Assembly (NCBI GenBank): GCA_000320545.1 | Contig: ADNK01001791.1 | Span: forward strand, 37,832 to 101,831 | Direction of reading: 5' to 3' | Source: Bigelowiella natans CCMP2755 | Taxonomy: Eukaryota > Protista > Cercozoa | DNA: 64,000 bases | Part shown: positions 18,781 through 53,149 of the stretch, piece after piece | Numbering within the stretch: position 1 is the stretch's first letter | Layout of the letters: each line of letters starts with the position of its first letter | Notes under the pieces: model-generated | The model's input: only the letters and a program-made list of their open reading frames with translations | Databases searched by the model: none | What the model was told of the DNA's origin: nothing | Made by a program: the position numbers and the translations under genes

Positions 18781-19620
18781 CTAGATAGTCTAGAGTGTGC
18801 TAAAAATTCACAAGCAACGTTTCATTCAACTAGTCAAGCTAGCAAGGCTACAAGGTAGCATGTTGATCCCATTCATGACATCTCTCATGTAGCGTTACAT
18901 GAAATGAGTCTAGAAATACACTAGCACACGCCGCAGCTTGCTAGCTAGCTAGCTAGCTGGCATCGATCATTTGCATGTCTAGCAGTGGGCATGTCAAACA
19001 TTCTGTCATTACTAGATTGCAACATCGCTAGATCGCTAGCTAACTAGCGGTACATTTGTCAATGACAATTGTCAGCACATGCAGCACACTCCATTTCTAG
19101 CATTTGCAAGAAAACTGCATACTAGCATAGCTACACAGCATGCGATCACATGTCTAGATGTGTGTGATTAGCTCGAGAGCTGCAAGTGCAAGTTCAATTA
19201 GCGCTAGAGCGTTCGACATGCACGACAGGGACGAGACGCAGCTTCCGCAAGAGGAAAACTTTGAAACTGGACTTTTGAAGTTCTAGTTCCAAACAAAGAT
19301 GGAGTACCACGTTCTAGCGCCATAGCGTTCTAGCTAGCATACGATGATCTAGATGATCTAGTGATGGAGGCTAGGAGGGTGAGTCAACTCCATCTAGCTA
19401 TGCTGGCATGCGAAGACACCAATACCATCTAGCTATGCTGGCATGCGAAGATACCTACGCGCTGTGACACCGTTCAAGAAAAGAATTGAAATACATCTAA
19501 ACATCTCAACACGATCTAGATTTGTAAACTCTCTCTTCCATTCTAGTCAAAATCACTGCATTTTTGGATCAGTTCAAATCGAATGATACATCTAGACATC
19601 TAGATAGCTAAAATTGGTGT
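18781..19620. other. CTAG-rich, partly TpA-depleted spacer between convergent genes
   Basis: About 32 CTAG in ~840 nt by eye; many other surviving TAs are in CTA or TAG context. Confidence 0.85.
19390..19455. repeat. Tandem direct duplication with a 35-bp period (ccatctagctatgctggcatgcgaaga x2)
   Basis: Direct reading: copies start at 19390 and 19425. Confidence 0.9.
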
Positions 19621-21585: not shown

Positions 21586-22029
21586 TGTGTGTTATGTATC
21601 GTTAAGCTTTAAAGCTCTTTGCCTGTGCATATGCCTCATGGCATTTCCCCCCTAATGAGCAAATTCGTGCTCGTCGCAATAGAAAATAAAGCCGAATTAG
21701 GAACTATTTGTTTAACTGATGCCCTTCTAGTCGATCTGGGTGTCAGATCCCTGTTGTGTTGCGCGGGAAGTGGGTTTTTGCTGAGATCAGATAATTTTGT
21801 TGCCATCCAGCTCTATCTTGTAGAAGGAAATTCAAACCATTTTTCTCTTGCGTCAAACTCTGTAGGGTAGAGAAGGAAATATTTCTGAATGTCACATTCC
21901 TTGAAATTTGATAGAACGAAGTAATTATTTTTAACCATCAAATGACGATTCAATAAATGGGCGCAAAACCATGGTGTGGATAGTTTCCGTGTTCTTTCAC
22001 CTTAATTTCGTTTCGGATTCGATCGGATA

Positions 22030-22916
22030 GAAAACGACTTGGATGCTGCTCCTGCGACAAGGTGTCCAGTGTCCAATTCATTGCAATGAACAAAACTCAA
22101 CTTGGTGCATCTTGAGCTCAAGTGCCAAACGATTTCAATTTCACAGATCGCTTCATCAATTGTGCATCTCTGGACCTGTTCGGTGCGACATCTGTCGAAA
22201 TGAACATGAGAACATTGTCACTTTGGGAGCCTTTGCTGCCATGTCTTCAAAGGAAAAGCTGTGCCTTGCTCTGGGGGCACGATTTGGTGCACCTTCGACA
22301 GGCAAAGAAATCGACAGGGCTCCGCCGAATCGATGTCCAGCTCAATGATTTTGCTGCTGTGCGCCAATTTGGTGATTTTGTCCTTCGTCTCTGTGCTCCT
22401 AGTTTCTGTCACATGCAAACCCGATCGAGATGACTGATTTCAGCTTGAACTTGGACACACTCCACCTACTAGCCTGTTCCTCTCTAGCTCCCTGGCTCTC
22501 TAGCTCTGATCAACAGATCAACAGGCAGTTCACCTGGCCCCAACTCATTGTCCTTGGCTTCCTCAGTCACAGGACACTGTGTTAGTTTTGTTGCTCAACA
22601 CCAACAGGGTGCTGACAAGTCCTCGCAATGATTTTTGTTGAGGCGCTGCTGCACGCATGTCCAGCTAGCTAGATGTGCACGTCCCATCTGCATGGCCATG
22701 TGGTTCTTGCTCACGTGGTTTTTGCATCACTGGGTCAATGCTTCGTTCATTGTTCATTGTTCAACATGAATCAACCAATTCGTTGACCAATCGCTTTTGT
22801 CCGGTCATCATTTCAAGCAAAAAGTGACACCATTCTTGCAAGTCTGGAAGTGGTGATGAAAGTGCCAGCTCCAGAGATCTAGAGATGCCTGCCTGTGTGA
22901 CTGCATCAAGTCCATT
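22030..22916. other. TpA-erased intergenic tract 1
   Basis: 9 TA in 887 nt by eye: 7 CTAG, 1 CTAC, 1 TTAG. Confidence 0.9.
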
Positions 22917-23247
22917 TATGTTTTAAGTTGCACTTTGTGTGTGCGCCCAGCCCAGGCCGGAGGACTGTGAGCATGTGTGCGTATCGTTGTCTAGTTCTAG
23001 AGTTATGCATCATTCGACAGGCCGTGTCGGCGCCAGAACCATCAGTTGTGCACATGCTCGATGACAAGTGTTTATGCACGATGCTGCTGTGTACGCCACA
23101 TTTAGACAAGTATGCGTTTAAAAAAAGTGCATGCAGATAATTAGATAATTCAGGTTTGTTTGCAGACACAGCGAAATAAATTTGATCATCGATAATTTGC
23201 CGCTCTATTGGCTAAGTTTTGTGCATGTACATATATTATGTATATAA

Positions 23248-23412: not shown

Positions 23413-24756
23413 TTATATTTCCGGCAACCACCTACCCGTCTTCGTAAATTTAATAGTGACTCGTCTCCTTTTCTCAAACTGAGCCTGAGCGAATGCCTTG
23501 TTCAACTTATTTACTTTCACGTCCCTAGAATCCGCAAGAGAGTAATGGCGTTTGGCTCGCCGAGCTACATGGTTCGAATCTTTACTTTTCGTGTCCCCTT
23601 CTTCACCTTCAGCACTGCTTCTAATCTGTGCCGTTGTCGACATCATCATCACCATGCTCTTGCCAGCACCTTCTCCATCTAATTTGCTATCCTTAGCCTT
23701 TAAGTCCTGCGTCGATGTTTCCGCCCCAGCTGTTCCATATGCTGCATCCTGAGCGACAACACCGTTGGGCGTTGAGCCGTAGGCTCCTGCTGCTGCTGGG
23801 TCATAGTATCCTCCTCCTCCTCCATAAGCAGCAGCAGCCCCATATGGATATGCTGCAGCGGCTGCAGCAGCATACCAGTACTGCTGATATGCAGCAGCAG
23901 CAGCAGCTGCAGCATATCCAGCCCCTGCATTAGCCTGAGGCGAGGCCCATCGTACTCGGAAGCAAGAATTACCGATTTGTCGACCGTTGAGGCCCTGGAT
24001 CGCTCTCTGGGCCATCTCTCTAGTAGCATAAACAACCGTTGCAACCCCCTTTCCAACTGGCATGGCGAGGCTTGTGATTTCGCCATATTCCTCAAATTCG
24101 CTCCGGACTTCAGACTCCGTCAACGTGAGATCGATATTCGTGACCAATAGACCGGAAGTTGATGCTTGTACTGCAGGATCACCACTGCCCCCTGTGCCGT
24201 TCTTGGCCACAGCTACGGAGACTCTCATGGCGCGATTTGATAGGTAAACGCCGGTCATTTCTTGCACTGCGCGGTCGCGCTCCATTTGGTCCGTGAATTT
24301 AATGAATCCATACCCTTTGGATATGTTGGTCGCTGGATCTATAACTACTCGTGCTCCCGAGACCGTGGTATAGCGTTGACGGAAGCACTGCTCTAGCATA
24401 TAGTCTGTCACATCAGGTGCGAGATCTCCAACGAAAATAGAGAATGAGGGACCCACGCCGCTCCCTCCACCCGTCTGAGCCCAGTTCAGCCTATAATATT
24501 TGCCAGGATTGCTAGGGACCGGTTTAGAGTTGAGGGTGGTTAGAACTCTTTCGGCTATATCACGGGAGCAAAACTCCACAAAGCCATAACCAGCGATGTC
24601 CCCTGTTTCTTTATTCCGGATCACTTTGACATTCTCGATCACATTCTTGTAGTCCTCGAACATTCGATAGACGAACGCCTCGTCCATGTGGGCATCAAGG
24701 CCTCCAACCCATAGCGTCTTGACATTTGTAGGCCTCGAGTAGTTCGCTGCCGCCAT
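23413..24756 (-). CDS. Intronless triple-RRM RNA-binding protein, RBP45/RBP47/NAM8/TRNAU1AP-like
   Basis: TLWVGGLDAHMDE..GYGFVEF, SIFVGDLAPDVTD..SKGYGFIKF, third RRM LLVTNID..KGVATVVY; A/Y/Q-rich region. Confidence 0.92.
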   Translation of the reverse strand: MAAANYSRPTNVKTLWVGGLDAHMDEAFVYRMFEDYKNVIENVKVIRNKETGDIAGYGFVEFCSRDIAERVLTTLNSKPVPSNPGKYYRLNWAQTGGGSGVGPSFSIFVGDLAPDVTDYMLEQCFRQRYTTVSGARVVIDPATNISKGYGFIKFTDQMERDRAVQEMTGVYLSNRAMRVSVAVAKNGTGGSGDPAVQASTSGLLVTNIDLTLTESEVRSEFEEYGEITSLAMPVGKGVATVVYATREMAQRAIQGLNGRQIGNSCFRVRWASPQANAGAGYAAAAAAAAYQQYWYAAAAAAAYPYGAAAAYGGGGGYYDPAAAGAYGSTPNGVVAQDAAYGTAGAETSTQDLKAKDSKLDGEGAGKSMVMMMSTTAQIRSSAEGEEGDTKSKDSNHVARRAKRHYSLADSRDVKVNKLNKAFAQAQFEKRRRVTIKFTKTGRWLPEI

Positions 24757-25110
24757 GACCGCGAGGAGGAAGAAGCTTCGGGTTGTCACAGTACCGAAAT
24801 AATAACAAGAGAATGAAAAAAAAGAAAACAATAAAGCGGCTATTGTTAATTTGATGCCCCACCAACAAATGCTTGTAGATCAAGAAATACACCGAATACT
24901 TCGTAAAAGGATGCAATGACAAAGAGAAGTCACAGTCCCAAGTTGGCAAGGCACGAAAGAAAATGGAACCAGGAATGGAGGATGCACCTGGAAAAAAGCA
25001 ATTGGAAAAAAGATGGACGAGGATTTCAAATGAGATCTTCAAGCTCCTCGATGGCTGAAATGCCATTCTTGATTCCTTCTGGTTTCACTAGTTAGACCTC
25101 GCTAAAGTTA

Positions 25111-25664
25111 GTTCGAGGCACTGCGTTTCGCACACTGCAAATGTCTTGCAACGTTTTGGAAGTGCAGTTTGTCTGTGATCATTGTTTCATTGTTTCATTG
25201 TTTCTTTTGGGATCGACTGCATCCAGGCTGGTTCAGCTTGTGCATGCCTTCTCATGGGATGCCACACACAAGTGGCACGCATCTGCATCATCACGGAACA
25301 TGCGCCAGCCCACACATTGAGCTGGATCGACTTGCTAGCTTGTTGTGCGTGTGCAATTGCGCAGTTTTTGTTCGGAAAGCGAGGCGTCACACGCGTGAAC
25401 GGAATCACGCGATGTGCGGGCTGCTGTGTGTTCACAGTCCAGGTTGTCAGGCACAATCACAATTGTGATTTCGCTGCATGACGAGCACAATTTCAAATGC
25501 ACGATGCAACTCAAGTGTGACATGATCGAAATGCCATGGAATTTGCATCAGGTTTGACCCGCATGCACACATGCGTTTCCATTTTGCATTGTGCAAATGA
25601 ACCAATGCAATTGACTGCTGAGACGTGGCATGCATGCATGCGCCCTCATTGCAGCGCAGCTCAC
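25111..25664. other. TpA-erased intergenic tract 2
   Basis: A single TA (in CTAG, 25336) in 554 nt by eye. Confidence 0.9.
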
Positions 25665-25793
25665 TAGCTCAAGCTAGCCAGTCCTATAGTCTAGGGTGCA
25701 CATGCAAACACATGTGATTGATGACTTTGAAATGTGCATGATACCGTTGTCGTTCGATTCTGTTGTTCATGCTGCAGCATGCACCACGACGGG

Positions 25794-33723: not shown

Positions 33724-34177
33724 GGTTCACCTGCGAAGACAGACATGTTTTGAGAAAGGTCTCCCAGATGGAAAAATTCAGCATCCACAGTGGATATTTA
33801 GATATGATTCGGCTGTAAGCCCCCCAGCTAGCAAACAAAACTCTGATACCTATTTCCCAGTCCTTCGGTTCCCTTCCCTCAAAAGATTGACGGACGAGAT
33901 ATGGGGAGGCGGGATGGAGGTTTGCAGTGTGTTCAACCGTATCAAGCAACTTTCAGATCGAAAGGTGTGAGAGAAAATTGTGCACAATCTCTATTTTATC
34001 CCTATAATTGCTTTATCTTTAAGTCTCTATCACTAAATGTAAGGCTTTAGGGTAAGTCACATATTCTGATGTTGAAAGTCTTCTTCTAAATCCAACCCAA
34101 GTAGAACGACCAAATCTTCTGAAAAACCAAAAGATGGCCTGCGTTTTGGGCAGCTTTTGGGGCAAAATCGCGACGTA

Positions 34178-35635
34178 ATGTCTCGAAAAATCTCTGGTGA
34201 ATCCAGAAAATCTCGCATTCTGATTCCATCGCGACATGGTTGCTGCGTGTTTGTGCGTGTCCAGATGTCCCCTTGTGGTTCTTGCTCATGTGCTCATGTG
34301 GTTTGCATCAATGATTCATTCATTGCTCATTGTTCATTGTTCATTGGCTGAAAATTGTTGTGGTTGTGAGAAAGAAAGACAAATTGCGTGACGATGCATC
34401 CCCCTCTAGCTAGCTAGCTAGCTGGCCCTTGTGTCGCAAGTGTCAGTGTTTGTGCGTCAGTTGCTTCTTCGTCCCGCCTTGATTGCAGTTTTTCACGTTC
34501 ACGTCGTCGAATTTTGTGCACATGGCTAGCTGGTCCCAAACCTTTCTCAAGGTCGAAGGTTTCGCTTGACGACGAACAATCCTGTTCCTTCTGCATCGCT
34601 TTCGTGGTTGCGGTGGTGCTCTCTGGCTCTCGGTGAGCTGCCGCGCAGTGTCGAGTTCCCGGGCAAGGAAACACGTCTTTGAGGATGAACTCATCAAATT
34701 TCTGTCGATAATCCTCCATCTGAATCGTTTGCAGCCACTCGACGTAGCCCGGATCGACCATCACACCGCACACCGCGCAAGCATGGCTGTTGCACGTTCC
34801 TGGACAACAAGAGCACGAGCACATGTCGTTCTGCTCAGCGAGGTCGATTTGATGGCATCCGTGAGCTCGTCGACCGCTTGGATGCGATTTTTCAACAAAC
34901 GTGACACATGCTCATGATGGACAAAGCAATGTGACATGCACGTCACTAGCTAGCTAGATCACATGTGCAACGTGCAGCGTCTGGACGTTGCACGTCCATC
35001 ACATTGTGATCGTTCAGCGTTTGTGACGTTCCCGCCCTTTTCGCCTTTTGCGACTCGTGAGAACGCAAATGAATCGCGCAAACTAGCAAATCACGTTGCG
35101 ACGCGACTTGACTCCTTGCAAGTTCGTTCGTGACCTGCACAAGCGCGCACACGTGGCTTTGCGTATGTTTGCTGCCACACGACACGTGCAGTGGTGCGTG
35201 CACTGCGGCGAGGCGTGACACGAGTTGCGACATGAACACTTCGCTCTGAACTCACGTTGCACGCACATTGCACACACGTGCGCGCGCGTGCAGCCACGTG
35301 TCACGCAACTGCATGGATGTGTAGATGCTCACACATGACGATGATGACATTTTGCTCTTTAGCTCTGTGTCCACACAAGCGATGCGATGCAGCAACAAAA
35401 AAGAAATGCGTCGCAAATTTAGCGTTCATTCGGTTGTGAGCAACTTTCGTGTGTTGTGTCCATTGTTTTCGAACTCTTTGCTTCAAGAAAGATAAGAACG
35501 ATGCAACGCAAGTTGATCTCTCATGTGTGCTTGAGATCAGGTGGACACTCTTTGCACGTCACGCACTCATTGTGACTGCTTCTTGATGTCTTGCTCACGG
35601 AACAGCCAACTTTCTTTCTTTTGATCCACAAAGGG
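34178..35635. other. TpA-erased intergenic tract 3 (largest)
   Basis: 16 TA in 1458 nt by eye: 9 CTAG, 2 GTAG, 2 TTAG, 2 ATAA, 1 GTAT. Confidence 0.9.
34414..34824 (-). pseudogene. Possible decayed coding fragment with a partial SAM-domain-like segment
   Basis: VEWLQTIQMEDYRQKFDEF resembles the SAM helix 1-2 pattern V.EWL..I.M..Y...F; the rest is C/H-rich and does not complete the domain. Confidence 0.3.
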
Positions 35636-35649
35636 TAAGTCAAAGATGG

Positions 35650-36327
35650 TCAAAATCCGCGAATCCCCACCTGAAGTACATGCATGTGAACTGCTGCCAC
35701 TTGTAATGAAACAAATAACCATGTAGTAAAATCTACAAAGGACAGGAAATTCATCGAAAGAAATATTGAATTTAGATTTTCACCATGATCTGGATCGTAT
35801 CCCCCTTTCAAAACGACATGGGATTCTACAAATTCTTTCAGTTCCTTTTCATCTCCAAACTAACCAAACAAGAAAATTGAAAACTTAATCGGAAGACATG
35901 CGTAAAAATCACTTGATTATTGGCCAAATAGAAATACAAACTTCTCCACACTTCTTTCGAAGAACATGTGGCTAGGCAAGGCAATCTCACCGGAAATAAG
36001 TCGCGGAAGTACTCGGTGTAGATATTCTGAAGCTGGATGGCATAGAGAAAGGGATGTAAACGAAAAAGTATAGGTAGATAGCCATGCCAAAATATGCCCA
36101 TTCAAGTGGATACGAGACTAATGAGAGTAGGTGCATTTCATTGTCTGTTGATTTTTCGTTGTGACGTATTCGACTCGATCGCGGCTCGATCTCTCAACCA
36201 CCTCGCCAACCCCCCCCTGCATACACATTTGAACTCTACTCGCCTAAACTTCGGTTTGAAAACACTTCATCATGTCGCACCACAGAACCGATGATCTACT
36301 TCGATTAGATGTACTTGCTACATATGT

Positions 36328-44697: not shown

Positions 44698-47600
44698 ATG
44701 TCTAGAAATAACTCGAAGAGCCTGACCATCGTACGGTGGGTTAATTCAGTGCTGGCACGGGGCAAGTATGATCCGATCGAATCAATGACAGATTCCTCCA
44801 TGAGGACAGGGATAAAGCTTATGCAACTGATGGCAGTCCTCTCAGGGGAGCCTCTCCCACGCCATAACCAGCGATGTCTACTGAGAGCACAGAAGCTTGA
44901 CAATGTGGATCAGGCACTGAAGATGGTAAAGAGGGCCGGTGTACCGAATAGTTTAGTGCACACCGAGCACATTGTGGATGGAAATGAGAAGATGGTGTTT
45001 GGTCTTCTCTGGGCCATATTCAAGCGCTTTTCTCTCTCCAAGATCTCGCTTCGCCGAAAGAATGGTGGAGATGCACTAAGAGGGAAGGAAGGTTTGCTCG
45101 CATGGGTCAACGACAACCTCGCAAATGAGAGTGGATCCGCAGAGGGTAAAGCGGATGGCAAAGATGATGGCAACGATTCCAGCAGCAAGAGCAGTAATCC
45201 GGTCACGGTGGTCTCCAATTTCACCAGCGATTGGAGCGATGGGTCAGTGCTGTGTTCGATTCTTCGCCACAATGGCTCAGAGAAAACTGGAATGTCGAGG
45301 GTAGCAACGATGAGTGCTGAGGAGAAAATTAAGACTGGGTTGACAGTCGCCGAAAAAGAATTTGACGTTCCTAGGCTGCTTGATGTGTCTGACTTTAAAA
45401 AGCCTATCGACGAGCGGAATATCTTGGTTTACGTCTCCGAGCTCTACATCCAAATAAACGCTCAGAAAGCTGATCAAGCACAAAAATCGTTCGAGAAAAT
45501 GCGGAACGAGGCCAACACGCAAATTGGTGACCTAGAGGCCCAGATCAAATCTCTCAAGGAAAAGGTCAGTATCTCCAACAAGGAACTCGAGGACAAAAAC
45601 GCGAAGCTCAAGGATTTGGCAAGTGCTAATGAGGAGCTCCAACGACGGTTAGAGACAGTCGAAGGGGGGCTGAAGAATTGCCAGGAAGAGAAACAGCAAC
45701 ATGAGAAAGAATATAAGTCCTGCCTTGGCAAAAGTGAAGAGGAATTAAAAGATTGCGAGAAGGAGAAAAGTGACCTTCGTATGAAACTCTCGCAGCTTCA
45801 GGAGTCAAGGTTATCATAAAACTCACACAACCATCAAATACGTCTCAATCTTTATTGACGTAGATGTATCTTTCATCTCATCACGTGACGTGTTTTTTGG
45901 CTTGACAATATGTATTCCGTGCGTGCAGCGATGCCAGGGTATTGGAATTGGAGAGAGCGAATGAGGAGCTCAGGAGACTGCTGGAGGGGGTGAAAGAAGA
46001 TCTCAAAGATTGTCGAGAGAAAAAGGAGACACAGAATACAACGCTGTGAGTTAATCTCATTTCCTTCCTCGCTTTTTCATATCCGCATAAGTATAATGAG
46101 TACTTTTCTCCTCTTAGAGAAGCTCGTGTGCGTGCTTTCGAGGGCGAAAACGATAAACTCAAAAGCGAACTCCTGACTTGTGAGAAAAATCTCAAGCAAC
46201 TACAAACTACGAGGTAATGCCAATTCTTTCAGATAATGCATTTATGTTTGTTGCTTTCCGTTCCTCACTTACGCTATTTGTTGTTCGACGGCTGCATATA
46301 TAGAGACGCCCAAGCTCAAGAGCTAAACCATGAAAACGCCAATCTCCGGACACAGCTAGAAGGAGTAACTAAAGAACTCAAAGACTACAAAGAGAAGCAG
46401 AAAGAGGATGATTCATCTCTTCGCGGGACCGAAAAAGCACTCAGGGACTGTGAGAAAGAGAAACAGCAGCTGCACACAAAGCTGCAGCTTGCAAACGGAG
46501 AAATTAAAGATCTTGCACAAACACTCTCTGCGTTAAGGAAGGAGAATCACGACATGAAGGTACCCAAGACGACGACATTATGAGAAGAATCTCTTCGGCA
46601 AAATATGGGAATAAATGTCGTTATCTTAATGGATCCAGCATAATATGATAATCACCGTATTTTCTTCATCATAAATATCATTACTATCACTATCATCCCC
46701 ATAATTAACGGCCACCTGCATATTACCATGACTCACATATCCATTACTCTGGGTATGTTTCCAACCATCATATAGATTGCTAGCGCTGCCAATCATGGGA
46801 AGGGCTTGGTAGGTCAAGGAGGATCAGAAAACTCCGGCTTATTAAAACAGCTGCAAAAGGAGAATAGGGAAAAGGACATCAAAATCAAAGAGTTGTATGA
46901 GAAAATTCTCCACCTCTCGAGTTCATTGAAAAAAAGTCTCCATGCACAAATCACAGCTCAATCTAAGCTGCAAGTCCCTCGTTCTTCCCGATCAAGAACA
47001 AGAGGTGACAGTAGGAACAGCAGGACGAAGAGTGGTAGTCGGTCACGGTCACGGTCGCGTGCATCCTCGAGAGCTTCGGCGAGGAGTGCGTCAAGGAGCT
47101 CTTTTGGAAGAAGGTGTAATCATCTTAGAATGTTGAGGATTTGGATTCCATTTTTTTTTTTAATGTAGTGATATTAATGATACGGTATGCTATCGATCGA
47201 TGTTTGAGTGGCTGTATAGTCGTATGGCGTACATTCACATTGCTTTTAGAGAGTTTTTGCGTGATGTAAGGGTTTGTGTGCTTGACGTGAGGGTGACTCC
47301 GACTATATAACGTTCTTCACTATGGGCACAAGCGCATCAGTTATATTGTATTTGCCCCAATGTTTGTGTGCATATATGCGCTTGTTCATCGGATTTCTTC
47401 GTTAGAGACGACGAGAAGGAGAAGGAGATACAGCGTAAGATGGTGGCTGAGAAGATGGAGGAGTTTATGGCAAAAGACCCCCATGGGCATCTGCTCTCAA
47501 AAATCGAGAACAATGCGTTCCTCTTCGGCACACGGAAGATTCATCTCTTCATCGTGACAGGAGAGTTGCACGTGCGAGTTGGTGGTGGCTATGTGAGCCT

Positions 47601-47748
47601 CGCAGAGTACTGTGCAAAATACGGTCACGTAGAGCGTTTGCACCTGGAAAAGCAGAAGGAAAAGATTGAAGCGCTACTCAAACTTGCCGGCAAGGAAGAA
47701 ACAACCGAAGCTCCTACTTCCTCCACTACAACACCGTGGCGGTCCTAA
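44698..47748 (+). CDS. Actinin-type actin-binding domain (2 x CH) + coiled coil + C-terminal GAR (Gas2) domain protein, 6 exons
   Basis: TIVRWVNSVL..GIKLMQLMAVLSG..QKLDNVDQAL..HIVDGNEKMVFGLLWAIF (CH1); KEGLLAWVN..NFTSDWSDGSVLCSIL..AEKEFDVPRLLD..DERNILVYVSELY (CH2); heptad region; FLFGTRKIHLFIVTGELHVRVGGGYVSLAEY (GAR). Confidence 0.88.
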
Positions 47749-47769
47749 CTAGCTAACACGCTGGTGCTA

Positions 47770-48411
47770 AATGCAGCTTGTGCGATGATGAGTGTGCACA
47801 AGAACACAGAAGCACTCACCGCTGTGGCATTCATCTCCAGTCACATCACTGTGTTGGTTCATTTGAGCTGTGCTGGCATGCATGCACAATGGCAATGCAT
47901 GCATTTTGTTGAAGCATTGCGAGGCATTGAGATGTGCATCAATGGATCACAAAGACGAATTTGCTTCAGGTGTGGCATGCACAGATTCCACGCCCAGTGC
48001 GATGCACACGTTCACACAGCTAGACAGACGGATGTGTGTGCGTGCACTGTGAACAACAATGCACGTGCACCACGTTCATTTTGCACTCAGTGTGGTCATC
48101 ACTGCACGCACGTGCACGTCGCAGTGACGTGCAATCAAACGTGACGAGCTGCATGTTTGCGATGCGAGCTGTGGCTTGCTCGAAATACAACAATGCCCCA
48201 ATTTTTTTGCGGCGCACAACTGCTCACACACGCCAGCACGGGTGCCAGCATGCACGGGATGCCAGCGCGAGTCGCATCACGCGTTGCAGCCGGCCCGTCT
48301 AGCCGTGTTGCTGCGTGTGCTCGTGTGCTCGACAGGCTTCAAGAGGTTCCCTGTTGATCATCACATGCTGGCATGAGTGCCAAGAGTGTTGCGAGTGCTG
48401 GCTGACACCAG
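47770..48411. other. TpA-erased intergenic tract 4
   Basis: 3 TA in 642 nt by eye: 2 CTAG, 1 ATAC. Confidence 0.9.
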
Positions 48412-48858
48412 TAGTCATCCATCATTGCAATTCGGAACGACGACCTCCAATTTCACCCAAAAAAATAAGTCGTCATCCATAGGATGTCGCTGGTATAAAT
48501 ATGAGGCCATTTTTCAACAATCTCGGTCTCTCTGGAAGGATACGACGACCGCCAGGATCAGTTCTTCCCCCCCTCTTTGCGAATCACTGGTGCGTCATGA
48601 CTATGGGCGCCATACAATCATTTGCTACCCATAAAGCACGATCGGCAGTGTGGCCTCATTCCAACATATTCCACCTTCTGTCTTCGTGCTTGTCATATCA
48701 CTTGAGACTTCACTGTGCATCAATTGTCGCATCGGCGCGTGTTGCTCATGCATACACGGCTGAAAACTTGAACTACTCCAAACCATTAGCTAGTGTTACG
48801 TGTCTCACTAGAAGGTTTTGGTTATAATAGATACGATCAGCGGAAATTTATACCTTCG

Positions 48859-49790
48859 ATGTCGGTGCAAAAGGAAATAACATCCGAGGAGGTCGGTGCG
48901 AGCATCAACGTTGCATCTATTTTCCTTGCACCCAGCTCACCAAAACTTTTGATTACTGAAAATTGATTCGAGATTTGCTGCAAAAGAGCAGCCACGGGTT
49001 TAGAATTCGCTTTGAGATGCCCATAAAAATAATATCTACCGACTGTTCACTACCGTGTGTAGTTTGGGTGTTGCCATTCCCAAAATCGGCACTGCTAACT
49101 CAACGCATTTGAACAGGCGAAGCTGTATGACCGGCAGATTAGACTATGGGGGATGGAAGCTCAGAAGCGCATGCGGAATGCACGCCTCTGCATTGTCCAG
49201 TTACGTCCACATACAGACTAAACAAATTGCCCAAATGCCACCTGCTATTTTCAGCAACGCACGCATGATGATGCTCTTACTCTTCTGAGTGTTAATGCTG
49301 TCAGGTTCTCCGGATTAGCGACGGAGATAATTAAAAACCTCGTCCTCGCCGGCGTTGGGGAGCTTACGGTGAGAAATTACTTCCAAATATTTAAAAATGA
49401 CAAGTATGCGCACCCCGTAAAAAGCTGTGTCAAATTTCAAAAGGGGCTCTTGAGAGCTCATCATTATCTCCGTTGTCATCACTTCTTATTCCTGTGTTAT
49501 TAATCAGATCCTGGACGATGCCATCTCGACCAAAATCGATTTAGAAAGTAATTTCTTCTTAACGAAGGACGACATTGGGAAATCGAGAGCTGAATCTGCA
49601 ATAAAAAGGTAGAGATTAGGGTGCCGCTACTGTGTTGGTGAAAGTAGCGTCTCTTTTCTTCCACACTTTTTCACCATCTCTCTCCGCCTAAAAATTGATG
49701 AACAGGATCAAGGCGTTAAATCCGAATGTCAATGTAAAAGCTGATGTCACAAAGAGTCAGGTCGGATGAGTCAATTGTGGAGTGCAGAAT

Positions 49791-49822
<32 letters not shown>

Positions 49823-50521
49823 CTTTCTGTTGCCTTATTTGTAATCTCATTATCACCTATTTAGCACGTGCTGTATTGTAAAACACACAACACACAACAC
49901 CTGCCGATGATTATAATGATCATGATGTTAGTTCGGTAGTGCTAAGAAAGGGCGAGATGCTGTTCACGTTTATCACTGTTGCTTGCGACTGATGACATGT
50001 GCACGGACAATGGCGGTTGCACTCTCATATGCGTCATGTAGGACAAAGATGGTGCTTATTTTCGTGGGTTCGATGCGGTGATTTGCTGCGAAACACCTCT
50101 CCCGGTAGTAGTAATGTTGTGATCGTGAGGAGGAAGAGGAGGAGGAGGAAGGAGGAGGAAGAGAAGAGGCAACGACGATGGCGTGATGTATCATCAACGA
50201 AAACAGCGATCATACATACATATACATTGCTTGTCCCCTCTTCCACCGTGGTCATCACCATTAACTTCGTGCTATGAAGGTGTAGATTGAGTTCCTTCGT
50301 CGGTAGTAGTAGTAGTAGAAGTAGTAATAGTAGTAGTAGTCGTCGTTGGAGTGGTAGACCTCAAATTCTCCCGCTTTCCTCCTCCTTCTGATGCTGTTTC
50401 GAAAGATCATCTCTTCTTATTTCCTTCATTAGGAACAGTTTCGAATAAATTCGGCCTGTCGCGATGTCGCTGGGGGCGGAAAGAATCCTGTTTTCTTCGG
50501 ATCCATGTGCATGGGTCGGCG

Positions 50522-50592
<71 letters not shown>

Positions 50593-50664
50593 TGTATATA
50601 GGGTATTGGGTAGAAATTTCCTAGGTTTCTTTGCTGATGTTGATGTTGATGTTGGATATTGCGA

Positions 50665-50700
<36 letters not shown>

Positions 50701-52007
50701 CTTTTGTTATTTTGTGTTATTCGTTTGATTTTACTATACTCCTTACCCGCGCTACCCCCCCCCCCTCGCAGGATACGATGCGTTTTTCTTTGAAGATGTT
50801 GGCCCTTCGTTTCAGTACATGGTAAGTTTAAGCTCGTCTCTTAGCATTAGTGATATAATATTTTGTTGGCCGTTGTTTCACGGTTTATTAGCGAGATTCA
50901 CAAGCTGATGATCGAGCGACTCATTGATTGTTTGTCCTTTTCCTTCAGCCAAAGTCTACCGGTGATGATGGGGAAAAAAAGAGTGGAGAAGGCAGCACAG
51001 AGAACAAACTCGAGACGGTGCTAACACGCTACTCGACAATATGTTTGTTTCTGCGAAATGCTGTTGTTTGCCCTGCTATTGAGCTGCAGCAGCGATTAGC
51101 AAGGTTATTTACTTGAATACGTGGAAAATTACCACTACGGGGCAGGTGCAAGGCCTTACCATGAAGGAAGCTTTCAGTTGTATCAACACACTCGCACGGT
51201 GCAAAGAGATTCTTGGGCGGAAAATGCGGGTAGTTGAGCGCATAACGTGGGAGGAGAAGAACACCATCATATTTACTCCTAAACTCTTCATCAGATGTAA
51301 TAATTTGTATCCGTTCAGTCTTATCTATATGTTACATTTATTCGCTTGATTCTTTAATATCCTGTCCTCCTCCATCAGAGACACTTGAGGTTGCTGTCTA
51401 TAGTGACGATATTCATTCACAACGCCTTGGCCGTGCAAGAAGGGGGGCAATACAGCTCGGATCTATCCTCGTTGAAGGTACGTTGGTGAACGACATCTAA
51501 GGGAGTTTATACGGCGGCAAAAAATCTGTTAGGAATTCTGTAAAGTAAGCACATCCGTCTTCTCCCCCCCCCCCTTGTACCTGCTCAGAAAATGCGCAAG
51601 AATCTAAGCCCGAAAGAGGTCGTTGTAGTTGTGCAGTTGCTCTGAAAACTTGGGGGATGAGACAAAATTGCTGTCTAGCCAACAGAAAAATGCGAAGCGT
51701 GCAGAAGGAAGCACGCTGTGGTGTGTTGTGGAATGAGAGACCGCGCAAACTGCCAACCCCCCCCTCTCCCACGAAAATACCTACCATTCCTCTCAAATCG
51801 TTGATTGATTGACTTTTGGATGGTGGTGAAAATAAAGGCTGCTGACGCAGTGGTTAGCGATGCTGATTTGGAAGCCTCGGCGCTGACGTTTGGAGGCGCC
51901 CTGACATCGGTGCTGTCTATTGTTGGGGGAATCATAGCCCAGGAAGCACTCAAGGTACTACGTTCACCGATAAATATATCTTCCTTGCTTCTCTTCCAAA
52001 GGGATTT

Positions 52008-52042
<35 letters not shown>

Positions 52043-52228
52043 TTGTTTTTACCGTAGGTTGTGTCCGGGAAGGGTGAGCCCCTTCATAACTGCGTGCTCT
52101 ATGATGGAAAGCGGGCTGGTGGGAGGGAGGTGTTTCTCCCACCACCTACCACCGGGAAGGCAGAAAGGGTAGTGGTGCCATCTCGGAAACGCAAGGCTCC
52201 CCCCGTAGAAATCCTAGACATCCTCTGA
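48859..52228 (+). CDS. SAE1: SUMO-activating enzyme subunit 1 (SAE1/AOS1), multi-exon
   Basis: MSVQKEITSEE|AKLYDRQIRLWGMEAQKRMRNA, GLATEIIKNLVLAGV, SNFF...IGKSRAES, LNPNVNV, SVLSIVGGIIAQEALK|VVSGKGEPLHN. Confidence 0.9.
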
Positions 52229-52758
52229 CAGTAAGAACGAGGATTGTTGTGTTGAATGATGATGCTATGCTAGCTAATTACAAGACGGCCATCATTGCCA
52301 TATTAAACATCTACATGGAGACGCATATAATATACTGCACGATGCCTGTCGTACTGCTATGATTTGTTTAATATGAAGCCGTGAATGCATGTGTATATAA
52401 GGGTGCATGTGTGTGGCACAGCGCGAGGACATTTAGCATCGCGCTGCAGTAGCATAAGCATAATGTAGAGTACGTGCCAGCTTGCACCTTATGGCGCCTC
52501 CGTACATGAAGAAAGTGGACTCTCACTAGACGTAGGCGCAATCATATGTTGCAGGCCGTTTGGAGCTGCGCTAATATACAACATGCATGGAATGCTGGTA
52601 AATACGTAAAGTGACTTTATTAAACACAATTTATTCCGCACTTAGAACTCTGTGCCCTACAAAGATAACATGTAGTCGTAGCAGCGGATGTATTCCAACG
52701 GACTTGACATGTATACCACAATGAATAGCTAGCCATGCTACCTTCACCGCAGTAGACG

Positions 52759-52795
<37 letters not shown>

Positions 52796-52842
52796 AAACG
52801 CACATCATGCAGCATCCTGCGTATGCAAACGACTCCTAGTTT

Positions 52843-53149
52843 CTAACGGCCGCCGCCAACACTCCCATTGCTCCCACGATTCGCATTATTAGCAGCAAGA
52901 TTCTGCAGGAAGAAGTTGAGGTCTCCCGACGCAATGCGATGAGGCAGTATTCCATTCTCGGGTTCCAGTACAGGATAATCTCCTTTCGAATCCCTGAATT
53001 CTTGAGAGAACTGCCGCAAGAGAGGGGGGATCGTCATCTGCCCCAGCTTGTTTTCGCTCATGGGCTGCTCCGTATCGTCCATGACGTTGAAGAATGCTTG
53101 TTGGTTGTCCTCCGTGCGAAACACGGTCTTTGTCTTAAGAAACACAACG

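Follow-up and report, generated by a model that had tools for sequence, protein, structure and literature searches.

A probable footprint of TpA-directed hypermutation across a 3′UTR and intergenic spacer in Bigelowiella natans

What can remove nearly every TpA step from several hundred nucleotides of nuclear DNA that begin just past the stop codon of an expressed gene? The question is posed by positions 47770–48411 of a 64-kb window of the B. natans genome, the window being the whole stretch of DNA analysed. This tract of 642 nt, to which no strand is assigned, retains three TAs: at 48021 (CTAG), 48186 (ATAC) and 48300 (CTAG). Its base content predicts 34.3 and the rate of the 64-kb window predicts 37.7 (Poisson P 9e-12 and 4e-13, respectively). 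The minimum TA count reached in 20,000 mononucleotide shuffles of the tract is 18. Values of rho are 0.087 for TA and 2.08 for CA+TG. CA and TG occur 83 times each, relative to a window mean of approximately 47 for either, so that an 11-fold depletion of TpA is accompanied by a doubling of CpA. The motifs TGCA, CACG, CGTG and CATG are present 19, 11, 8 and 8 times, respectively (window means 4.2, 2.1, 2.3 and 3.5 per 642 nt), and GCATGC five times (window mean 0.4). Other dinucleotides are not similarly affected: rho is 1.17 for AT, 1.02 for TT and 0.75 for AA, versus 0.09 for TA. The loss is specific to TpA and is not a general loss of A and T. The two products are distributed along the strand without local skew (runs test on CA and TG, z = -0.31). 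GC content is 0.537 in the tract, 45.2% in the window and 44.87% in the published B. natans nuclear genome (Mettrop et al., bioRxiv 10.64898/2026.01.13.699255). The tract's GC gain of approximately 0.1 is equivalent to approximately 65 conversions. The window contains three further tracts of this type, at 21941–22980, 24881–25680 and 34071–35710. The initial annotation of this DNA had reported three TAs in 642 nt, two of them in CTAG, together with dense TGCA, CACG and CATG, and our recount returns the same sites and the same enrichment. Its placement of the start 22 bp past the stop codon is literally correct; the TAA occupies 47746–47748, and the tract is preceded by a last TA at 47768.

The genes on either side of the tract are transcribed from the same strand. 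The upstream gene (44698–47748, + strand), labelled a cytolinker, encodes two calponin-homology (CH) stretches, a coiled coil and one GAS2 domain; domain searches were done exon by exon (Pfam CH, E 4.9e-30; GAS2, E 2.5e-5). Its six exons are 44698–45807, 45927–46045, 46118–46211, 46302–46557, 46774–47111 and 47404–47748, with a coding length of 2262 nt, or 753 codons plus the stop. The start of the first exon is placed at 44698 by the open reading frame and the reach of transcript contig X1. The GT..AG joints are present in spliced contigs from three studies. The stop codon falls within TAACTAGCTAA (47746–47756, + strand), where the sequence and the translation of the last exon reveal stops in all three frames. 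Transcript contigs X4, X3 and X1, each from a different study, end at 47853, 47857 and 47866. Raw reads with a 3′ bias (X21) reach a depth of 4.0 and then 11.5 (47667–47863) in the last two bins and 0.01 beyond. Contig ends and raw reads together define a 3′UTR of approximately 105–118 nt (47749–47866, + strand). This length is ordinary for the genome, because the 3′UTR of a syntaxin gene in the same window is approximately 144 nt.

The distal 85–95 nt of the CH-GAS2 3′UTR, approximately 80% of its length, lie inside the tract. This transcribed part contains no TA in 91 nt (5.8 expected), with 13 CA and 12 TG. The other 545 of the 642 nt (85%) are untranscribed and contain 69 CA and 70 TG. They belong to a silent spacer (47867–48454) that is represented by no contig in three transcriptome assemblies and has a raw-read depth of at most 0.09. 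The tract therefore covers the 3′UTR and termination zone, as initially proposed, since the mRNA ends at 47853–47866 fall within it, 85–95 nt past its edge. The choice originally offered, between a very short 3′UTR and a process acting on 3′ flanks, resolves into a part of each: the UTR is of ordinary length, and the tract continues well beyond it into untranscribed DNA.

Downstream, a TATA-box-like element, TATAAATA (48494–48501, + strand), precedes the transcript starts of the next gene by 23–44 nt, and the TAs of the element are all intact. Contig joints define the first, non-coding exon of that gene (48524–48589, + strand); transcript starts are estimated at approximately 48524–48538 and intron 1 spans 48590–48829. 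The product is a SUMO-activating enzyme subunit 1 (SAE1/Aos1-like): a 27-aa exon (49117–49197) matches chains 8vy5 and 1y8q at E 1.3e-6, and a weak ThiF match is found in Pfam. Within this gene, contigs treat 50432–50820 as one 389-nt exon. This segment lacks a clean open frame and contains (CA)n, (TA)n and (TG)n microsatellites; it probably reflects an intron that the contigs fail to resolve or a fault of assembly at the repeats. Two other genes of the window have close counterparts in sequence collections. The open reading frame at 23416–24831 (- strand; 472 aa) shares 97% identity, over 99% of its extent, with jgi/Bigna1/89018/estExt_fgenesh1_pg.C_420096 (EukProt), a B. natans gene model on scaffold 42; this match and the GC content assign the window to the B. 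natans nuclear genome. It encodes an RRM protein of the RBP47 or poly(A)-binding type, with plant relatives at approximately 40% identity, and not a kinase. The syntaxin has letter-for-letter copies in the MMETSP, EukProt and JGI transcript sets.

The tract is sharply bounded. Flanking introns are TA-normal, with rho(TA) of 0.96 at 47112–47403 and 0.85 at 48590–48829, and exons remain at the usual coding level (rho(TA) 0.41–0.55, rho(CA+TG) approximately 1.1). Within the window, a lack of TA is not a general trait of 3′UTRs and spacers. In the last CH-GAS2 exon, six TAs that have a synonymous route to CA or TG are still standing, and two of these, at 47715 and 47727, are in its poorly constrained tail. 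The TAs between the stop codon and the tract (47750 in CTAG, 47754 and 47768 in CTAA) belong to the two most resistant context classes. Because the TA at 47727 is kept and every TA from the stop codon to 47770 is in a resistant context, the left edge is placed within 47728–47770, and the mutated domain may start as early as the stop codon. On the other side, TAs in sensitive contexts return from 48412 and rho(CA+TG) drops to 1.14, and the tract ends approximately 83 nt short of the TATA-like box of the SAE1-like gene. CTAG(C) motifs are also observed at or near the edges of other tracts, for example at 25665–25680, 34407–34422 and 34947–34958.

A process with this signature has been measured in the same species. 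In a mutation-accumulation study of B. natans, 231 of 302 nuclear single-nucleotide mutations fell in one NCLDV insert and one virophage insert; 230 of these 231 were A>G or T>C and were reported to fall on TpA (Mettrop et al., bioRxiv 10.64898/2026.01.13.699255). The same authors describe 124 genome-wide clusters of TA-poor, CA+TG-rich 1-kb windows, tie the process to viral and transposon or other foreign DNA, and name the ADAT2 homologue Bn78255 as a candidate enzyme (bioRxiv 10.64898/2026.01.13.699255). [quoted passage not shown] The tract passes both cut-offs widely and, at 642–710 nt, fails the three-window rule; that rule sets a minimum size for the survey and does not describe the process. 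Both expected products, TpG and CpA, are present, and AT, TT and AA show no comparable depletion.

From composition, edges, transcript map, species and published spectrum taken together, we conclude that the tract is very probably a footprint of the TpA-directed A:T-to-G:C hypermutation of B. natans. It shares with the mutated NCLDV and virophage inserts the host species, the conversion of TA to TG or CA on both strands, the combination of low rho(TpA) with high rho(CpA+TpG), and a weak point before G that is visible in Table S2 of the preprint. It differs from them in being 0.64 kb long, non-coding and without detected viral or transposon ancestry, and in lying between two expressed host genes, with a working 3′UTR included. 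The preprint's mutation lists contain a single scaffold 42 entry, an ordinary C>T. Almost nothing is left to mutate at this locus, because three TAs remain as targets. One feature counts against the hypermutation reading: none of the targeting models stated so far predicts that the left edge should fall sharply within a transcription unit. The preprint's text is silent on flanking context, CTAG, UTRs and non-TpA targets (bioRxiv 10.64898/2026.01.13.699255).

Sites that escaped conversion define the sequence context of the process. Two of the three survivors in the tract are in CTAG, at 48019–48022 (TA at 48021) and 48299–48302 (TA at 48300), and the 12-nt surroundings of the second are 92% complementary to those of the first. 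Across the four tracts of the window, CTAG accounts for 22 of 50 surviving TAs versus 4.7% of background TAs (odds ratio 16, P 5e-16), and ATAT for 0 of 50 versus 17%. The mutation-accumulation data reveal a related preference. The trinucleotide column of Table S2 (bioRxiv 10.64898/2026.01.13.699255), tallied by hand, holds 226 TpA events. On either strand, the base after the edited A is T in 76 events, A in 71, C in 56 and G in 23. G thus follows in 10% of events; its share is 20% for the TAs of this window (P 6e-5), which serves as background in place of the viral regions. Halving of the rate before G on both strands accounts for part, not all, of CTAG survival.

The same table points to a second target. 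Among the 211 mutations listed for the NCLDV region, four A:T-to-G:C events lie off TpA: three T>C in ATG and one in ATT. Read on the other strand these are CAT and AAT, with T following the edited A in each. At the ordinary mutation rate 0.04 such events are expected (P 1e-7). The text of the preprint says that all fall on TpA and omits these events that its own Table S2 lists. The ‘rest of genome’ list of that table holds two more of the kind (ATG and ATT). B. natans probably has a minor CAT-to-CGT side activity, which a rough per-site count puts at approximately 1% of the rate on TpA, and the dense CACG of the tract probably derives from it. A cluster of ACGTG, CACG and CGTG motifs at 48060–48150 can be read as secondary CAT-to-CGT products of CATG, the alternative being a cluster of functional boxes. 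CGT/ACG reaches 45 per kb in the tract, whereas background DNA has 20–23 per kb both as it stands and after simulated conversion. Among CpGs, the CGT-type share is greatest (0.38 and 0.35 versus 0.26) in the two tracts closest to saturation. TGCA and CATG stand at 72:41 across the four tracts, and one CACG/CATG difference occurs in a repeat common to two other tracts. A separate pattern is seen among the indels of Table S2. Of the 21 de novo insertions listed, many are short strings with ACA at their end (TGACA, CCAACA, TACA, TACACA, GCATTACA and others), a hint that B. natans has a second mutational process with a pattern of its own.

The DNA that preceded the tract can be partly reconstructed. 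When every TA of TA-rich stretches of the window is changed to TG or CA at random, the simulated products have 170–175 CA+TG, 12–19 TGCA and a GC content of approximately 0.5; the tract has 166, 19 and 0.54. One round of conversion applied to average DNA leaves CA+TG, CACG/CGTG and GCAC/GTGC below the tract values. A TA-rich ancestor and the putative side activity are needed, because the motifs of the tract exceed what a single round makes of average DNA. Transitions cannot change the pattern of purines and pyrimidines, so this pattern still informs on the ancestor. The pyrimidine–purine step frequency of the tract is 0.323, in the top 0.1% of the window, and is equalled by a TA-rich spacer at 52217–52860. 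From this match the ancestor appears to have been a TA-rich alternating spacer with approximately 60–80 TAs. The period-3 signal in purine/pyrimidine space is 3.3 in the tract versus 6.4–22.8 in exons, and since it is absent the ancestor is taken to have been non-coding. The spacer at 52217–52860, with a rho of approximately 1.3, a (TA)17 run at approximately 52760–52793 and many GCATGC/TGCATG motifs, resembles an unconverted counterpart of the tract.

A history of the locus can be proposed on these grounds. (i) The starting DNA would have been a TA-rich, non-coding spacer with alternating purines and pyrimidines. (ii) Each TA would have become TG, by A to G on one strand, or CA, by A to G on the other, presumably via adenine deamination in DNA. 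(iii) Many independent hits on both strands would have carried the conversion near to completion, so that three TAs escaped, two of which lie in slow CTAG; TGCA and CATG would be the double products of former TATA. (iv) The mutated domain of approximately 660 bp would extend from the CH-GAS2 stop codon (within approximately 40 nt) through most of the 3′UTR and the poly(A) site and across the spacer. The exons and introns on either side would have remained untouched, with the domain stopping approximately 83 nt before the SAE1 TATA-like box. (v) Once the TAs were exhausted, the approximately 100-fold weaker activity on CAT would most likely have produced the excess of CACG, CGTG and ACGTG. Published rates set a time scale: 206 TpA events were recorded on 6169 TpA sites over 3132 generations (bioRxiv 10.64898/2026.01.13.699255). 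The implied rate, approximately 1.1e-5 per TpA per generation, would bring erasure to 95% after approximately 3e5 generations. Through ordinary C>T and G>A mutation the tract would regain a TA only once per approximately 2e7 generations. Because new TAs arise so slowly, a finished tract would stay visible long after the activity has ended.

Whose DNA was mutated is a separate question, and here our confidence is lower: we lean modestly towards native DNA. The same hypermutation may instead have acted on a short foreign or mobile insert, such as a virus, virophage or transposon fragment, which landed just past the stop codon, provides the present poly(A) site and is no longer recognisable after mutation. 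We consider this doubtful and by no means negligible. In the preprint the process is associated with sequences of viruses and transposons (bioRxiv 10.64898/2026.01.13.699255), the sharp left edge favours an insert, and the loss of 60–80 TAs in 640 nt would mask weak homology. Several observations oppose an insert. Searches with the tract found no Pfam or PHROG match, viral relative, protein relative, copy in the window or terminal repeats. The lack of a period-3 signal is informative in the same direction, as the process cannot alter purine/pyrimidine space. Removal of the tract would leave just approximately 135 nt between the stop codon and the SAE1 transcription start. The CH-GAS2 3′UTR has a length normal for the genome and the tract holds a working poly(A) region. 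Finally, TA-containing spacers and the syntaxin 3′UTR share the motif style of the tract.

The searches behind this comparison cover coding relics, relatives and repeats. Ten open-reading-frame pieces from the tract were compared with Pfam and eight with PHROGs, and nothing falls below E 0.04; the Cys/His/Met-rich frames of the tract are a by-product of TG/CA-rich codons. Two of its frames have no match among IMG/VR contigs, and a 126-aa frame has no relative among 5.8 billion proteins. No orthologue of the last CH-GAS2 exon was found in metagenome contigs or by a protein word search whose length filter excludes full-length relatives. Blastn at sensitive settings, run against the window and from tract to tract, and a transition-tolerant diagonal scan detect no copies above shuffles. 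A 34-nt similarity between 47957–47986 and 25539–25572 in the tract at 24881–25680 (79%, E 0.01–0.13) is too weak and short to indicate a shared element. Terminal inverted repeats, target duplications and tandem arrays at the tract are nowhere convincing. An Rfam scan of the tract finds no family. A scan for bacterial-type promoters and terminators is empty, and is irrelevant in this host.

It is proposed, tentatively and at somewhat less than even confidence, that the hypermutator reaches native DNA, here a spacer and most of a 3′UTR. It would be bounded by features of the gene body and not by the ends of an element, and would remodel host regulatory DNA, with an approximately 100-fold weaker CAT to CGT target making CpG and ACGTG motifs in tracts exposed for a long time.

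Explanations that dispense with the hypermutator fare less well. The tract could be a selected promoter or terminator island, rich in protein-binding motifs of the TGCATGCA, ACGTG or TGCTGGCA type, or a product of GC-biased gene conversion; both are improbable. The location upstream of the SAE1 promoter suits an island, as do five ACGTG within 90 nt. The 8-mer TGCTGGCA or its complement is found three times in the tract (47871, 48243 and 48366) and nine times in the window versus 2.8 expected, and motifs of the GCATGC type also occur in TA-containing spacers and 3′UTRs of the window. Such an island leaves the loss of approximately 30 or more TAs over 640 nt unexplained, and the survivors share their CTAG context with three unrelated tracts. 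Gene conversion should strip A and T whatever their context, and it is excluded by AT and TT, neither of which falls below expectation. Against either stands the measured mutational process of B. natans, which has the exact signature (bioRxiv 10.64898/2026.01.13.699255). Two more copies of TGCTGGCA are found 35 nt apart elsewhere in the window, at 19401 and 19436.

Selection against UA at the RNA level in a long 3′UTR, as might protect an mRNA from UA-directed cleavage or from AU-rich decay elements, is very improbable and is refuted by the transcript map. The tract does adjoin the stop codon and its first 85–95 nt are in the mRNA; against this, the 545-nt remainder is silent in three assemblies and in raw reads, CA:TG is even in the transcribed (13:12) and silent (69:70) parts, such selection would not double CA and TG, and the syntaxin 3′UTR in the same window is TA-rich. 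The initial annotation preferred a DNA process and named a sense-strand depletion confined to the UTR as the pattern that would speak for RNA-level selection. Its preference holds: that pattern is not seen, and the depletion runs beyond the transcript with CA equal to TG. Strand-coordinated editing, as in an R-loop or single-strand model, is ruled out by the equality of CA and TG and by the runs test.

Comparison with known mutators and editors helps to delimit the process. Fungal RIP acts on duplicated DNA, where it converts C to T, chiefly at CpA, and so enriches TpA. It resembles the present case as a dinucleotide-specific, strand-symmetric transition hypermutation that acts in discrete, sharp-edged tracts and is read as genome defence. 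It differs in direction, as the tract loses TpA and gains CpA/TpG, and in its need for duplication, as the tract is single-copy within the 64-kb window. RIP of the fungal type is rejected on these grounds: TpA is depleted, CpA is doubled and no duplicate is found in the window. ADAR hyper-editing and the ADAT2/ADAT3 and TadA deaminases share the conversion of A to I, read as G, and a preference for U or T 5′ of the edited A. In the tract, unlike in these systems, the change is fixed in DNA, on both strands, and includes untranscribed DNA. ADARs tolerate or prefer a 3′ G, whereas G after A is disfavoured in the B. natans process. APOBEC3 and AID also produce clustered, context-specific deamination of foreign or selected DNA; their changes are C-to-T and usually strand-coordinated, whereas the change in the tract is at A and uncoordinated.

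The process is already published for B. natans, and the tract adds no new system. New here is an RNA-anchored footprint that overlaps a working 3′UTR and fills the spacer between two expressed, housekeeping-type genes. Its edges are at a stop codon and short of a core promoter, no foreign signature was found, and a minor CAT target emerges from the published table. The hand tally of Table S2 supplies two candidate rules for the enzyme: events are half as frequent with G after the A, and approximately 1% activity is directed at CAT. If the DNA is native, the preprint's reading of the process as defence against invaders would be too narrow, and its targeting would need to be explained by chromatin or position and not by the origin of the sequence.
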